This document shows positions 53,027-61,207 of a stretch of DNA of 64,000 nt, one piece after another. This DNA comes from Selaginella moellendorffii (taxonomy: Eukaryota; Plantae; Lycopodiophyta). Position 1 is the first letter of the stretch. Each line of letters begins with the position of its first letter. The stretch spans positions 2,397,839 through 2,461,838 of the forward strand of contig NW_003314267.1 in NCBI RefSeq assembly GCF_000143415.4. The letters run 5' to 3'. The notes beneath the pieces were generated by a model that was not told where the DNA came from, did no database searches, and was given only the letters and a program-made list of their open reading frames with translations. A program made the translations under genes and the position numbers.

Positions 53027-53818
53027 TCACAAGGGAAGCAGCAACACGGGGCAAGGAACGAATTCTGCAAGGAGGTTCCCATCAATGTGCTTGGAATGAA
53101 TGCATTCCATGCTGAGAACGACCAAGTCTAGCCCCATGTCATCCGCAACTTCTCCTATTACCACTGCTGCTTTCTTGCCTTCTCCAATCTTTTCCAGCAT
53201 CCCATAGTCTTGGATTCCTCCTACAAAAGAAAAATGTATCACAAGTTTACCAATGAATATCAATCCCAACCTTCTTCCAGGTGCCAGCGAATTGTTTGAA
53301 GTCTCTGCTCGTAGTCTTTCTCCTTTTTCTCCTCATCAATCACTGCAGCCACGGCAAATTCATAATGGACGTGATGGACCCAAACAAAAAACGAAGTTAC
53401 GTACCCACAACTGTGATCTTTGCGCCATACTTCTTCGCTAGAGACGTAGCTGTTGCCGCGGCCTACAAAAAGAAAAACAAAGAAAGAAACAGCACTCAGA
53501 ATCAATCAAAGAAAAAAACTGAGTTTTTGCAACCTGACGAGTCGAATCCGACAGATACGGGTTCTTATCGATGATGGGCAGTAGAACATGTTGAAACTCT
53601 TTCGCTATTGCTGGAGCTCCGTCTGCATTACAGTGAATCGGCAACTCGAGAGACAAACAAGAATCCGACTTACCAGTAGCACTACTGCTGCACCGAGCCA
53701 CCCGAAAGCGTTGAGGACGAATCGAGTAGCATCTAGACCGATTTGCTGGGGCCTGGAACGAAAAGCAAGACAAAGAAGAAGAGGTTGAAAGGCCGATCCG
53801 GCTGATGTTGCTCATCAT
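53027..53818 (-). CDS. Universal stress protein (USP)-domain protein, probably plastid-targeted
   Basis: Ser-rich transit-like N-terminus; FQHVLLPIIDKNPYLSDSTRQ, IGEVADDMGLDLVVLS, LLAEFVPCPVLLLPL; several short introns. Confidence 0.85.
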
Positions 53819-53971
53819 CGTCGCCCAAAACCAAGGAAGAGAAACCAAAACCCACAAAGTCCACTTGGACAGTAGCTAGGGCTTTCCAGACTCTTCCCCT
53901 TCCTAAATCCTGCTTCCTGCCTAGCTATGGAAACTAAAACCAGTGTAAACTAAAATTGAATTTCCCTGTCC

Positions 53972-55656
53972 CTAAGAGAAGCTTGCTTCCTGTGCTATCC
54001 TTCTAACTTCATCCACCTGGGAAATGATCGCATCTGTGCTTTCGATCGGTACCTCTACTGCTAATTGCAAGCTGTGTCTGATGATGCTGCTTGACGTTGT
54101 CGTCGTTTTCTTTTTGCTGCTACCCGGTGTGGTCTTCTTCGCAGACCCTGGCTTTGGTGGCTTGCCTCTCGGCTTCTTTTCTGCGGCTTCTCCCGGGGAG
54201 TTGGACTTGCTGTGGCCGTTTCCATTTCCTGCTTCCTGACCACCCGCATCAGTCTCCTGGTGGGAAAAAAACAAGGCAAACTTTTGAGAAAGAACGAGAT
54301 CAATTAGACATGGAGGCACCTGTTTCAGAGGTTCCATCTGCAGTCTCCCGCCTGCTGCTGCTGCAATCGCTGCCACTGCCTCCATTTCGTGGGTACCGGC
54401 AAAAGGAGCGGCCGACATCGGCTGCGGAGGCGTATGGTCCTTCCAATCCGTGATTGGGAATGCAAAGTCCGGACCGAAGTTGAATCGAACCGTGCAGTTT
54501 GGCTCGTTCGGAAGCGTGTACATTGAAGCAGCAGGAAAGTACCGTCCTGCGTAGATATCTTTGTAAGCACAGCCCTGGTACACACCGTTTCTAAAGAACA
54601 CAATCTCGCCTCCTGAAAACAGAAAGCACCAAGACGTCGTTACGAAACGGTGAAAAGAAACAAGAGTCGATACAAACCAGGCAAAGGCCTGAGAGGCTCC
54701 TCTTTCGTCTCGGCAGTGTAAGGCAAGCCTTTGAAGCTCACAATCTCCGGTGGCTTTGGAGCAAGAGCAGCACCATTCGGCAAGTTGATGTAGAAGCCAA
54801 TCGTGTCACCTTCAATGTAGGCTTCTCCATAAGGCTCCCTGAGCGCTGCATGGACTTTACTCCCTTCCAGGTCCCGGTAGCCATATCCATGACTGTCGTA
54901 TCCAACCGGAGCCTGGACATCACCCTTCTGCGTACACCACCCAAGCCGCGTGTGCCCAGTCTTCCCCAAGTGCTCCACAGTGATCTCAAAGTACCAAGCT
55001 CCTTCCACAACACCCCGAGTAGCTCGGACCATCCGGTACCCTTTGATACTCCCAGCCGAGAGCTGGTCGGCGCTGAGCTCCACCTTCTCGGCCTTCTGGA
55101 GCTTGGAGAGCAAAACTGGCAAGTCCGGCCCATCCTCGATCTTGGGAACCACGGGACTGAGGTAGACCGAGTTCTCATTCTCCAGAGCTTTCGCCTGTGT
55201 CTTGCTGCCCCCCTTTTTGCTGCTCTTCCTCGTCGTGCTCTTGCTCCAAACGTTTGTGTTTCTCTTCTTTGGCTTCTTCGCTGCCGCCGCGGATGCCCCC
55301 TCGTCCCCCTGCTTGCGTTTCTGGCTCACCTTTCCCTTCTTCTTGTTGTTGCCTCCCTCAGCAGCTGGAATCTCCATCTCTGGAGTCTCTGGCGCTGGAG
55401 TCCCGGGGGCGGCCTCCTCCTCCTCCTCCTCATTCCCATCCCCACGATTCACATTCTCGATCGGCACTGCGTCGGTAGCATCCGGAGTGGAATTTGGATC
55501 CCTACTCACCCCTTCGTCGTCATCGCCCGCCGCATTCGGGCTGTTGTTGTTGTCATCGTCGTCGTCGCCGAGCCGGAGCGATGGAGTGCGATCCTCGTCC
55601 TCCATCTCCTCGTCGCCGCCCTCGCCCTGCTCCGCGAGCTCCTCCTCCATCGTCAT
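53972..55656 (-). CDS. ASH2R: ASH2L/TRAUCO-like COMPASS subunit (SPRY domain)
   Basis: Acidic N-terminus, [59 protein letters not shown]; 3' exon structure tentative. Confidence 0.93.
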
Positions 55657-55737
55657 CACCTAAAACCCTAAAAATATTTTCACGCGAATATGCCCAACGA
55701 ATAATCTTACTCCGGGAAAAGGAAAACTCTTCGTGCT

Positions 55738-56224
55738 CTAGCTCTTGAGCCTCTTGGCGAATCGCGCGATCACTTGGAACTCGTCCAGATGCTGTGACAA
55801 GAAGAGATAGAAACGATCGATTAGTGGAGCGCTTGGCTGTGGGGCTTGCCTGTTGGGACGCGAAATGTCGGATCACGGCTTCTAGCAGCTCCTCCTTGGA
55901 AGAATTGGGGCTAACAGGCTGCAAGAAAATCAGGACGCCAGAAAGAGAAGCGATCGATCGATGCGTACGAGTTTGAAGTGGCGCCGGTACCGCCTCAGCG
56001 CCGCCGTCTCCAGCTTGCTCAGATCCACAATCTGATCCAAGAAATATCCATCGATGATTGATCGATCGATCGAAAGAGGGAGAGAAAGAGGAGAAAGAAG
56101 ATAAAAATCTATCGATCGATCAGAAAACTCTCACCGTTTCTTGCCGAGATCCCGTCGCTGCTGCTGCCGCTCTTGGATCAATGTGAGTGGACGATCGCTT
56201 CTCGGAGGAGGATTTCGCGTTCAT
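55738..56224 (-). CDS. 91-aa SAP30 Sin3-binding-domain protein (SAP30/AFR-like)
   Basis: Exons 56135-56224, 55969-56031, 55850-55918 and 55738-55791, all phase 0 (third intron GC-AG); VDLSKLETAALRRYRRHFKL..SPNSSKEELLEAVIRHFASQQHLDEFQVIARF. Confidence 0.88.
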
Positions 56225-56347
56225 GGAACTGGCGATGGATCGAAATCTTTCGCTAGGGATATTCGAGCGATGGAAGGAAGAAAGGGGTATATTTTTGGGC
56301 TTGGCCTTGTTTGGATTTTAGGGATTGGATTGGGGAAAGGAGGAAGG

Positions 56348-56934
56348 ATGCTGATCGAGGCGGACGTCTACGAGGATTACATCCTTTGCGACAAGCAGCG
56401 AGCTGGCGGCGATGATGGCCGCGACCGCGGTGATGACGATCGCGCCTCCCAATCATGCGTCGTCGATCCTCCTCCTCCAGCGCCGGCGCCAGTGATTCCC
56501 GAGAAGAAGGAGGCGGTGGAAGAAGAATCGCAGAGCGCCGCCAAGATCATCGATGCCGCGGCGGCACTGCGATGGATGCAAGAGCTCGGCCGCGATTACA
56601 AGGCGTATCGGCTCCAGAGCCTGGGATTTCTCGTCCTTAGCACCGTGCTCTTCGCGGCTCTCCTGGCGATCGTCGTGTGGCAGCACAACCAGATCCTCGT
56701 CTTGAAAGAGGTAAGTCTCTAGAAATTTTTTCTTTCCTCCATCGATTGACTGATCGATCCGATCGCTTTGTTTTCCAGAGGGTGGAGTATCTCTCCCAGG
56801 CGGCGTACATCCAGGAGACCCCCATCACGATCTCCCGCCCGCGCTGCACGACCCTCTTCCCGAGCTCCCTGTGCGAGACCAGCAAGGAGCTGCTAGGGCG
56901 CTTGCGATCGCGCTTGATCAACGAGTTTGCCTAA
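56348..56934 (+). CDS. Unknown single-pass membrane protein, two exons
   Basis: MLIEADVYEDYILC...; TM LGFLVLSTVLFAALLAIVVW; intron gtaagt 56711 to ttccag 56778 in phase; alternative ATG at 56270. Confidence 0.65.
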
Positions 56935-57050
56935 ATTCTCTAGAGATTTCCAGCGATTTCTATCCCCCCGATAGAAATCGAGAGAGCTTCTTCTTCATTG
57001 TCACTCTCACATACATTGTCTAAATTCCGTTTTTCTCTTTCCGCAAGTAC

Positions 57051-57218
57051 TCACTCTTTGATCTGATCGCGCTCGCGCTCGCGCTCCCGCGACAGCATCA
57101 TTGGCGAATTCCTGTCGGGCTGCCGATTGACGAAGATCAAGTAGCCAGTGACGCCCAGCACGATCGCGGTGAAGATGTAGAGCCCTCGCGTATTGAGCCG
57201 CGTCCTTCGATCCTCCAT
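57051..57218 (-). CDS. 55-aa single-pass microprotein (below the ORF-track cutoff)
   Basis: MEDRRTRLNTRGLYIFTAIVLGVTGYLIFVNRQPDRNSPMMLSRERERERDQIKE*; preceded by aaccctag/ttaggg telo-box-like motifs; GC-rich codons. Confidence 0.55.
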   Translation of the reverse strand: MEDRRTRLNTRGLYIFTAIVLGVTGYLIFVNRQPDRNSPMMLSRERERERDQIKE

Positions 57219-57527: not shown

Positions 57528-58508
57528 TCAGTAGAGAGATTGAGAAGAGGAAGAAGAATCGGGGGAGGAGGACGAACTGGGCGATGAATTGGAGGAGATG
57601 GGCGGAGAGGAGGCCGATCGTCGAGTCTGCCTGGTGTTGTAGGAGTAGCAGTGGAGGCATTTGTGAGCAACAATGTGAAATGGTACCTCGGAGGATCCAC
57701 CGCAATCGTTGCACAGGATCCACACCAGCTTGTTGCGGTAGGCATCGGGCATGGGCGTGGCGGCGATCTCCTGATCCAGCCTCTCCCATGCCGAGCTCAT
57801 GTCACACACCGACTTGGAACACACCGGGCACGAGAACTGCGCGTGGAGGGTCATCTCGCGGAGGCACTCGCTGTGGATGGTGTGGCCGCAGCGCAGAACC
57901 GTGATGTCGCTGATGGAATCGAAGAGGTAGTCGAAGCAAACCGGGCAATTGTGGTGCATCGAGTTCTCCACGCACGAATGCCCCTTTTGGAGCGCCACCG
58001 CGTAGCAGCAGCCACACTTGTCGCAGTGGAAGAACTTCTCCTGCCCGCCGACGCGGCAGATGCCACACGAATCGCAGTGGAACTGGCCCTTGCTCACGTC
58101 GTCGTCGAAGAAGCGGCAGATCGAGCAGTAGTAATCGCCCATGGAGACGCCGCAGCCGGAGCAGACCTGGTGGACATCCTGCTCCAATCCACACAGCGAG
58201 CAGATGACGCGCTCTACCTTGTGCCGGGGGAGGTCGTGGCGCTTGGAGGGATCGGCCTCGTTGGCGTTCATGGCCTCGTTGTGGCAGTGGCGGCAATTGA
58301 AGATCCCATTGCAGCAGGGAGCCCGGATCAAGCAGCGCCGGCGGTAATGCGCACAGCCATACTCCATCACGCCCTCCTTGAGCGCCCGGATCTGCTCTTC
58401 CACGCCGCGCGCCAGGGATTCCTGGCTGAAAACCTCCGCCGCCGTCGCGATCTCGATCTGGTGCGACAGCGTCGAATGCAAGCCGGATTCCACCACCGCC
58501 ACGGACAT
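57528..58508 (-). CDS. CHY zinc-finger/RING E3 ligase (PIRH2/MIEL1-like), intronless
   Basis: [65 protein letters not shown]. Confidence 0.96.
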
Positions 58509-60202
58509 CTTGGAAATCTTGGCGCTCCTCTCACTGGACTGGATCAAACCCTAGCCCCCATCCGCCATAGCCAACAAGAACAAAACAGCCGGCCACATAT
58601 ATAGGGCAACGGGGATCGAGGGAAACTGTTTTTGTGGCATTCCGATCCGGAATCGTGAACAGATCCGACGGTCAGGATGGCGCCGTTCCTGCGGCGCGGG
58701 ATTTATGTCCATCGAACGGTTACGGCTTCTGTCCCTTTGTTCGTTGGGCGGTTGAGATTTGTCCTAGGGCAACTTGGCATGATGATGGGATAGAGTAGGC
58801 CATTTTAGATCTCGTCTGATTGGCCGTTACGATCGCCAATCACTCGCCATTTTTTTTTTTTGCAGCATTTTTACTTTTCTTCGGATTTACGAGCGAAGCA
58901 AGAAAAAGCAGTCTTTGCTTGCCCCGTCTCATTCATAAAGAACATTGAAGAGGGAAAGAAAACGCTCAATCGCGATTCCATCCTTCTGGATTAATCTTGG
59001 AATCTCTACCTTGGATTGTAAAAGGAATAATTCGTGAGGGCCCCGTAACCTTGTACATATTGGGAGACCTAGGCCTAGTCTAAGTAAAAATGCGGTGGAG
59101 TCCCACCCATCCACGCTCGCTTCCTTATCTCGCAAGGAACGGCGGCGGCGGGTGTGGGACACGCCGCGGCGTTAAATGCCCCACTTTGGCATTTGCCCCC
59201 ATCGTGGGTCGTGTGATCAGCTCAAAGCTCTGCCCAATCCACGAACTCTCCAAGATTCTATCAGATCGATCCATGGAAGAATAGGGTTTTTAATCTTCTC
59301 TAGAGAACATGCTCTACGCAAAGATCAAGCAGTCAGGCGTGTCGGGAATGCCCAGACAAGCGCCAGACAAAAAAGCTAGGGCTTGTCTCCAATCCCCCAT
59401 TCTTGCACTGGAATATCCTCCAGTTACAAGAATATTCTCGTGGTCGACAAACGAGGTCGTCGTTACGAAACAAACCTCTCCCAAAACGGACGAAAAAATC
59501 TTCCTTCTCGGCAGCGAGTACCTCTTCTTTTTTTTCTTTTCTTCCTTTTGTCCCGACTCCTTCCTCGGGAACTTCCAAACGAGAAACGCTCCAATTGCTT
59601 GGCTTGCTTGCTTTGATTTGCTTCCTTGGCTGGCTTTTCTCCTGTCGATCGATCTAGGTAGCGGCGGCGCCAAGGGTCGGGTCTTGGGAGAGCTTTTCCT
59701 TTTCTTCTTTTGCTTCGAATCTCTTCACTGTTCCAAAGTCAATCTCTTGTCCCACAAGAAACGCAGCGGTGGTATAGCTAGTGGCGTGGAACACGCCGTT
59801 TCTTCAATGACTAGCTAGCTTTGCGTGTATCCTGTGAGAAAGACCCGTCTCTCCACTGCGCTATGCCACCACCAAGTTCCACGAACTCTTCGTCTTCATC
59901 TTCTTCTCTTCCTCCTCTCCTTCCCAAATCCAAATCCCAATCCTGTGTGTCTCGTCTATCCATCTATATCTGTTGTTTCTTCGCTGTTTGTTTGTTGTGG
60001 TGTAAAGATCCCAATGCTTGTGAAAAGTGTGAGAAGACACATCCCACTCCTCGGGGATTCCTTCCAAAATACTCCTGTTTTTTTCCTCCTCCTGCCTTGT
60101 TCCCTGTATCTTGCTAAAGAAAAACGGTGCCAGACCAGAGTTTGACCCGTTCGTCCGTCTGGTTCTTCTTTGTCGGCGCCACAACGAACTCCTCCTTGTT
60201 TT

Positions 60203-61207
60203 CTAGTCGTTGCTGTTGCTGCTGCTGTTGCTCGAGTGGCTGTCGTTGGCAGTGTTGCTGGTCGCAGCAGCGGCCGTGGGCGGAAGAGATGGCGGTCTCT
60301 TTGTCTGCCTGGTGTTGAAAGAGCCGCAACCGGGGCACTTAAGCGCGAAAATATGAAACGGTACCTCGTCTTTGTGATTGCAATCGTTGCACAGCATCCA
60401 CACCGTCTTCCCCCTCAGGGCCTCCGGCATGGGAGTGGCAGCAATCTCCTTGTCTAGAGTTTGCCAGTACTCGGACAAATCCAGCACCGACCTGGAGCAC
60501 ATAGGACAAGTGTACCTCGAGTGCAACCGCATCTCATTGAAGCAGTCGGCGTGCATGGTGTGGCCGCACTGGAGCACGGTTATCTGCTTCACGGAGTCGA
60601 AGAGGAACTCAAAGCACACCGGGCAGTTGTGGTGCATTGCTCGCTCCACACAGACGTGCTTGCCTTGGAGAGCCACCGAGTAGCAGCAGCCACAACGGTC
60701 GCAGTGGAAGAAGTTGTCCGCTCCTCCAACGCGACAAATGCCGCATGCGTCACAGTGGTACTGGTGCTTGTCCGTGTCGTCGTCGAAAAGGTTGCACTTT
60801 GAGCAAAAGTAGCTCCCCATGCACACTCCACAGCCTTCGCAAACTTGCTGCACGTCTTGCTCCGTGTCGCACAACAAGCAAATGACCCGCCTTACAGACT
60901 CGCGACGGATTTGGTGCCTCTCGCGAGGGTCAGCCTCCTCGCCCTTTGCTTCGTTGTGGCAATGCCGGCAACCAAAAACCTCGTTGCAACACGGAGCTCT
61001 GATACGGCACCGCCGCCTGTAGTGCGGACAACCATACTTCCTGCGACCCCTCTCGTTTTGTTCTTCTTCCCTCTTATCTTCTACCTGCTCCCCATCCTCC
61101 TGCTGTTCCATCCCCGTTCTAGAAACTAAGGCCTCGGTTCCATTGCTCGTTCCAGATTCCACCGAGCAACTGAGATCCCAGGGGACACGCCTGTCCAGCT
61201 CCTCCAT
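60203..61207 (-). CDS. Second CHY zinc-finger/RING E3 ligase paralog, intronless
   Basis: [53 protein letters not shown]; ATG 61207 follows a probable 5' UTR intron acceptor. Confidence 0.95.
   Translation of the reverse strand: MEELDRRVPWDLSCSVESGTSNGTEALVSRTGMEQQEDGEQVEDKREEEQNERGRRKYGCPHYRRRCRIRAPCCNEVFGCRHCHNEAKGEEADPRERHQIRRESVRRVICLLCDTEQDVQQVCEGCGVCMGSYFCSKCNLFDDDTDKHQYHCDACGICRVGGADNFFHCDRCGCCYSVALQGKHVCVERAMHHNCPVCFEFLFDSVKQITVLQCGHTMHADCFNEMRLHSRYTCPMCSRSVLDLSEYWQTLDKEIAATPMPEALRGKTVWMLCNDCNHKDEVPFHIFALKCPGCGSFNTRQTKRPPSLPPTAAAATSNTANDSHSSNSSSNSND

Follow-up and report, generated by a model that had tools for sequence, protein, structure and literature searches.

In the lycophyte Selaginella moellendorffii a gene for a small SAP30-like protein lies directly upstream of a gene for an ASH2R/TRAUCO-like protein, both on the minus strand of contig NW_003314267.1 (RefSeq assembly GCF_000143415.4). 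Coordinates are those of the window, the whole stretch of 64,000 nucleotides analyzed here (positions 2,397,839 to 2,461,838 of the contig). RNA exists that joins at least the last SAP30-like exon, stop codon included, to the ASH2R coding sequence through a splice across the gap between the two genes. The preferred explanation, which is given an even chance, is that of overlapping transcription units, with a read-through isoform of bicistronic form that carries the intergenic splice and, in addition, an independent ASH2R start. As part of this explanation, the two genes stand head-to-tail in a very compact stretch and would be translated separately, and the locus is not an obligate bicistron of the type described for green algae.

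The stretch is contained in 20 public runs, four of which (X1, X2, X6 and X7), from four studies, were aligned to positions 53400-57100. All four consist of assembled contigs, and GT-AG joints in each of them identify the material as RNA-derived. Contig depths are per-contig means and were used only as arithmetic for which contigs cover which bins, not as a measure of expression.

The SAP30-like stop codon ends at 55738 and the ASH2R ATG lies at 55656 on the same strand, 81 nt apart; this distance had been given in a preliminary description of the DNA and was exact when the coordinates were recomputed. The same description had placed in the gap an intron of 51 nt, leaving a spliced spacer of 30 nt. 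A spliced intron is present and its donor (GGA/GTAAGA at 55710) is the one proposed, but the acceptor in use, tttttag/GGTTTTAGGTGATG, is the AG located 8 nt upstream of the proposed one. The intron as found in RNA contigs is a 43 nt GT-AG intron (55668-55710, minus strand), spliced in X1, X2 and X6, that is, in three studies (joint 55666/55710, cut +1, in X2 and X6, with the equivalent joint in X1), and no run of the four shows the 51-nt form. The spacer between the open reading frames (ORFs) thus consists of a first part of 27 nt (55711-55737) and a second part of 11 nt (55657-55667), both on the minus strand, and measures 38 nt after splicing and 81 nt before it. The joint in X1 sits on a divergent allele with a spacer longer by 6 nt and likewise free of ATG. 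A fusion protein, or read-through of the stop codon, was considered as a candidate product, as the 51-nt intron would put the two ORFs in frame, 30 nt apart. It was rejected on the basis of the 43-nt splice, because the 38-nt spacer contains, 6 nt ahead of the ATG, a TAG in frame with ASH2R.

The most complete contig is that of X2, a single sequence of 3978 nt which contains every SAP30-like exon, the gap splice, the whole of ASH2R and the downstream gene. In X1 a single contig of 3611 nt contains SAP30-like exons 2-4, ASH2R and the downstream gene. The X6 contig (166 nt, record 9) joins 55710-55794 to 55666-55586 and comprises SAP30-like exon 4, the adjacent 27 nt and, from the coding sequence of ASH2R, the first 71 nt. 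Such joining is no proof of a bicistronic mRNA, because contigs merge overlapping transcripts. Contigs in all four runs also chain ASH2R to a USP-like gene whose ATG (53818) lies 153 nt past the ASH2R stop, and the X2 contig extends at its other end to 56452, into the coding region of a divergent plus-strand gene.

In X6 and X7 ASH2R is fully assembled (contig means 16.8x and 22.6x), yet SAP30-like exons 1-3 are without any contig. The depth found over these exons in both runs is wholly accounted for, bin by bin, by a 31-nt cross-match to a paralogue (56000-56030). The contigs of X6 and X7 are suggestive of ASH2R transcripts that start inside the SAP30-like gene. In X1, SAP30-like exon 1, present at about 10-20x, is found on contigs of 5-15x, whereas the long contig has a mean depth of 98.8x.

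A telo-box, AAACCCTA on the plus strand, occupies 55663-55670, where it spans the acceptor of the gap intron 7-14 nt before the ASH2R ATG. Telo-boxes lie close to transcription starts in plants, and the position of this one mildly favors a nearby ASH2R start. Seven telo-boxes are present in the window versus 2.0 expected, a second one (58546-58553) being found about 40 nt before the ATG of a neighboring CHY-RING gene.

The chaining of ASH2R to the USP-like gene, a control for the behavior of the contigs, bears on the explanation by fully separate mRNAs, in which SAP30-like transcripts end shortly after the gap splice or in the first ASH2R exon, ASH2R transcripts start in the SAP30-like gene, the assembler chains the overlaps and no molecule carries both complete ORFs. 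The ASH2R/USP-like pair cannot work by leaky scanning because ASH2R has 27 internal ATGs, and this pair is nevertheless joined in all four runs by the same contigs. The extension of the X2 contig into the divergent coding region and the lack of contigs on SAP30-like exons 1-3 in X6 and X7 agree with separate mRNAs as well, as do the short distances between coding sequences around the locus: annotated gaps of 57, 102, 180 and 194 nt occur within 21 kb, and because such comparable gaps lie nearby, the 81-nt gap represents the short end of a compact region and no outlier. Three observations speak on the other side. X1 expresses the SAP30-like gene, but neither an intron-retaining nor a separately ending SAP30-like form was assembled in this run, the depth in the gap bin being that of the spliced contig. 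Within 440 nt past the SAP30-like stop, the sole AU-rich hexamers resembling poly(A) signals, AAAATA and AATATT, are both located inside the 43-nt intron. Finally, the donor lies 27 nt past the stop, so that SAP30-like transcripts which reach it probably splice into ASH2R. Fully separate mRNAs are rated as possible but rather doubtful. Among the observations which the preliminary description had named as contrary to its own model, an internal ASH2R start fits X6 and X7, suggestively; polyadenylation of SAP30-like transcripts ahead of ASH2R and a lack of spanning reads did not materialize, as no separate SAP30-like 3' end was seen in the contigs and spanning contigs are present.

The preliminary description had reported that the spliced RNA contains no ATG between the two starts, and the scan gave the same result: in the 311 nt of spliced RNA from the SAP30-like ATG to the ASH2R ATG, all frames are free of ATG. 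In the unspliced sequence the sole ATG between the two starts is that at 56051, in intron 1. The probability that 311 nt lack an ATG is 0.0045 when the ATG density of ASH2R itself is assumed, 0.0115 in a mononucleotide shuffle, 0.02-0.05 in random 311-nt stretches of the window and 0.16 in a codon shuffle with the absence of internal Met given. The depletion is real but modest, and for a locus picked from thousands of windows it is not compelling by itself. SAP30-like transcripts of three other species contain 3, 3 and 4 internal ATGs. The SAP30-like start, gttccATGa, has T at -3 and A at +4, and ASH2R has starts at 55656 (gtgATGa, G at -3) and at 55650 (acgATGg, A at -3, G at +4). On the general plant consensus, a scale not specific to Selaginella, the SAP30-like start is weak and the ASH2R starts are adequate to strong, in agreement with the earlier reading of a weak first start and a strong second ASH2R ATG.

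These features are those of the bicistronic mRNAs described for green algae (PNAS 2025;122:e2417695122; PMC11892635), in which the median length of ORF1 is 291-600 nt and that of the spacer 40-183 nt, and the resemblance to this pattern claimed in the preliminary description was borne out for ORF1 length (276 nt), spacer (38 nt spliced), AUG depletion and weak first start. The model drawn from it was that of an obligate, or at least predominant, bicistronic mRNA, a single capped transcript on which leaky scanning past the weak SAP30-like AUG fixes the ratio of a partner of the Sin3-histone deacetylase (HDAC) complex to a subunit of COMPASS. Apart from the match to the published pattern, this model can call upon the X2 contig, in which all exons of both genes are properly spliced, and upon the presence of internal ATGs in homologous SAP30-like mRNAs elsewhere. 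An obligate bicistron is argued against because ASH2R was assembled without SAP30-like exons 1-3 in two of the four runs, and the depth of exon 1 in X1 falls far below the mean of the long contig. Iso-Seq shows only polycistronic transcripts for the green-algal bicistrons, which are also conserved between species and supported by proteomics (PMC11892635). By contrast, ASH2R appears to be expressed without the SAP30-like 5' exons, which points away from exclusivity as far as holes in contig cover, a weak form of evidence, can do so, and the arrangement is not conserved in the two other land plants tested. At the level of contigs, at least SAP30-like exon 4 was found joined to ASH2R in three studies, and exclusive expression of ASH2R in that context was not found.

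The comparative results likewise count against the obligate model, which is regarded as very unlikely. A check of synteny had been suggested in the preliminary description and was run on Diphasiastrum complanatum and Marchantia polymorpha by tblastn with six SAP30-like proteins. No SAP30-like match was found within 10 kb upstream of ASH2R in either species, the matches being at chance level only (E >= 0.08), although the sensitivity of this search is limited because the SAP30 domain is split over short exons. The adjacency of the two genes was not recovered in these two species. The SAP30-like transcripts of the three other species have no ASH2R downstream, and no SAP30-SPRY fusion is found among the best 150 relatives of the SAP30-like protein, the top long matches in that search being a triple-SAP30 protein and an unrelated repeat protein. 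No paper linking the two was found when the literature was searched for SAP30 together with ASH2R, and a search for Selaginella polycistronic transcripts and Iso-Seq yielded nothing on the SAP30-like/ASH2R locus. The last point against the obligate model is that the second ORFs of read-through RNAs in Arabidopsis are rarely translated (PMC9768141).

The closer match is indeed provided by the read-through transcripts with intergenic splicing of Arabidopsis (Kurihara et al. 2022, Commun Biol; PMC9768141), rather than by the green-algal bicistrons. Read-through was reported there for 271 loci, and in 158 of these a splice connects the two genes. The intergenic splice removes the termination signals of the first gene, the second genes also have starts of their own, and nonsense-mediated decay degrades the read-through RNAs, which rise in upf mutants. 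The Selaginella locus shares with this class a splice connecting the first gene's 3' region with the second gene's 5' region (the 43-nt intron of X1, X2 and X6), which would remove the termination signals of the first gene; the X6 and X7 contigs and the telo-box at its start suggest that ASH2R may also be transcribed alone, like the second genes there. It differs in size, with a gap of only 81 nt and an intron of only 43 nt, and in that ORF1 comprises 91 codons, is AUG-free and has a weak start, features not reported for the Arabidopsis set. In addition, the Arabidopsis class is founded on long reads, cap analysis of gene expression and dependence on nonsense-mediated decay, whereas the evidence for the Selaginella locus consists of assembled contigs. 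The extreme compaction and the AUG-free, weakly initiated ORF1 would, unusually, permit translation of ORF2, as judged from the sequence features of the locus.

The Arabidopsis loci are at the same time the precedent for an unproductive read-through RNA. In this explanation ribosomes halt at the SAP30-like TAG, the 1.7 kb and two introns located downstream trigger nonsense-mediated decay, and ASH2R protein is made only from the mRNA of its own gene. The 271 loci, the 158 cases of intergenic splicing and the rise of these RNAs in upf mutants lend themselves to it, and the two ASH2R introns lie more than 1 kb past the SAP30-like stop. A total absence of AUG together with a weak first start is unexpected for a mere by-product, though the statistics are modest. 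An unproductive RNA is thought conceivable, with the balance of probability leaning against it.

According to the preferred explanation of overlapping transcription units, transcripts from the SAP30-like promoter would continue into ASH2R, and the gap splice would take out the sole AU-rich poly(A)-like element past the SAP30-like stop. The product would be an RNA of bicistronic form resembling the 'intergenic splicing' read-through transcripts of Arabidopsis. ASH2R would have its own start within the SAP30-like gene, which would be the source of most ASH2R mRNA. Some ribosomes scanning the long isoform would be able to reach the ASH2R AUG, owing to the weak first start and the 311 nt that lack an AUG. 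Several points weigh against this explanation. The contigs are de Bruijn assemblies without power to show starts, ends, strand or single molecules, and each depth is averaged over a contig that includes ASH2R and the gene downstream of it. As a hole in contig cover is no proof of anything, the absence of the SAP30-like exons from X6 and X7 is only suggestive. The AUG depletion could be due to chance (P up to 0.05, or 0.16 in the codon shuffle), or could be due solely to a requirement for an ASH2R leader free of AUG that overlaps the 3' end of the SAP30-like gene. A more far-reaching version, that of a working bicistronic mRNA in which gap splice and leaky scanning give both a Sin3-HDAC-binding microprotein and ASH2R and in which the choice between splicing and termination tunes the output, is considered unlikely. 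The proposed setting of a ratio between an HDAC-complex subunit and a COMPASS subunit has the adjacency of the two genes as its only support and is purely inferential.

Nuclear mRNAs that function as bicistrons are well established in green algae, while land-plant cases are very few, chiefly CDC26-TTM3. The CDC26-TTM3 bicistronic transcript of land plants, cited in two sources (PMC11892635, PMC9768141), is deeply conserved, from algae to Arabidopsis, and experimentally shown. The Selaginella locus is similar in that, on one strand of a land-plant genome, the gene for a small regulatory protein precedes that for a larger one, and different in that the SAP30-like/ASH2R pair was found only in the genome of S. 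moellendorffii and is a putative bicistron. If it were a functional bicistron, it would constitute a second, lineage-specific case in land plants, in a lycophyte and with two chromatin regulators, and would indicate that leaky-scanning bicistrons can arise anew as genomes compact. The locus would also be a natural and compact setting in which to study the choice between termination and intergenic splicing.

The SAP30-like and ASH2R genes are both genuine genes with correctly assigned domains, and the identities proposed for them at the outset were upheld by profile matches to PF13867 and SPRY and by relatives named ASH2 or TRAUCO. The SAP30-like product comprises 91 aa encoded by four exons on the minus strand (ORF1, 276 nt). 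Residues 37-90 match the SAP30_Sin3_bdg profile (PF13867) over positions 1-53 of 53 with 72.9 bits versus a cut-off of 22.2 (E 2.6e-20). The probable 5' untranslated region (56225-56311) is an ATG-free leader of 87 nt suggested by an X1 contig (record 3, 56135-56311). Exon 1 (56135-56224) begins with the weak-context ATG at 56224 and is followed by intron 1 (56032-56134), a GT-AG intron of 103 nt with a pyrimidine-rich patch and clustered GATCGATCG motifs, the joint 56031/56135 being present in X1 and X2. The SAP30_Sin3_bdg domain begins in exon 2 (55969-56031). Intron 2 (55968-55919; joint 55918/55969 in X1) measures 50 nt, the length stated in the preliminary description. Exon 3 (55850-55918) is located between it and intron 3 (55849-55792), a GC-AG intron of 58 nt whose joint 55791/55850 is found with CT..GC ends in X2. 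Exon 4 (55738-55791) ends with the TAG stop at 55740-55738 and is contained in record 9 of X6. All three introns are hence present as spliced joints in RNA contigs. The palindromic motif GATCGATCG (cluster at 55951-56121) occurs 12 times in the window versus 0.35 expected, with 7 of the 12 copies in SAP30-like introns 1 and 2; the motif may act as a cis-element in an internal promoter or be just a microsatellite-like (GATC)n tract.

The small SAP30-like proteins of plants (about 63-156 aa) consist of PF13867 only. Over its whole length the 91-aa product can be aligned with the Sin3-binding region, and it is 56-77% identical to the small proteins of Closterium, Tasmannia and transcriptome sources. 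Many of these relatives have an internal Met (HFMSQ, GFMQAAK) where the Selaginella product has Ala or a short deletion, and the product is 2-3 residues shorter than its relatives at two places. An abundant contig of more than 3 kb, present in all four runs, shares with the locus only positions 56000-56030 (31 nt, part of the conserved SAP30 motif) before it diverges, and is probably a longer SAP30-like paralogue at higher expression. A 431-aa protein (P0133), which is not from the window, has three tandem SAP30-like domains, an unusual architecture for the family.

The ASH2R/TRAUCO-like gene (53972-55656, minus strand) encodes 518 aa in three exons (55656-54678, 54612-54320 and 54256-53972), and its splice joints are found in all four runs. 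The SPRY domain scores 38.2 bits versus a Pfam cut-off of 26.3. Homologues amount to 517 matches at E <= 1e-10, including proteins named TRAUCO or Set1/Ash2 subunit ASH2, and the closest of them is a hypothetical protein of the lycophyte Diphasiastrum with 73% identity.

The public annotation was compared on scaffold GL377571.1 of GCA_000143415.2, which is identical to the window over the 10 kb that were compared. This assembly lacks an annotation for the SAP30-like gene, no gene being called between 56270 and 55656. The annotated SPRY model (653 aa, 55656-53027) joins ASH2R to its downstream USP-like neighbor. This fusion is contradicted because the RNA contigs keep both the stop at 53972 and the 153-nt gap, the contig piece 53674-54255 that contains the stop being unbroken in all four runs. 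ASH2R (518 aa) and the next gene are separate ORFs, and the annotated model is a false fusion. Copies of the genome's own SAP30-like or ASH2R protein were not found among the protein matches in the length ranges searched, because the former has no annotated gene and the latter is represented by the fused model of 653 aa; a search of the contig collection for an exact copy of the 91-aa product gave no match. On an ordinary reading of the locus, too, the annotation of S. moellendorffii thus lacks a gene for a conserved SAP30-like microprotein and contains a wrongly fused ASH2R model.

The downstream gene (53027-53818, minus strand) encodes a protein whose N-terminus resembles a transit peptide and whose body is USP-like; the end of the gene at 53027 is taken from the fused GenBank model. 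On the other side of the SAP30-like gene, a divergent plus-strand gene for a protein of 198 aa (56270-56934) has its annotated start 46 nt from the SAP30-like ATG. Its start is more likely an ATG near 56352, because the RNA contigs of this gene begin at 56322-56324. The ends of the SAP30-side and plus-side contigs (56311 versus 56322) are about 10 nt apart, which suggests a very tight bidirectional promoter. Two tandem genes for CHY/RING zinc-finger proteins resembling MIEL1/RZFP34 follow on the minus strand (57528-58508 and 60203-61207), about 59% identical to each other; the telo-box at 58546-58553 precedes the proximal one.

Differences between the runs and the window include insertions or deletions in coding regions at 54122 (3 nt), 56403 (9 nt), 56450 (3 nt) and 57067 (6 nt), in addition to many single-nucleotide polymorphisms. 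S. moellendorffii is known to have two divergent haplotypes, and the in-frame insertions and deletions together with the polymorphisms are consistent with them.

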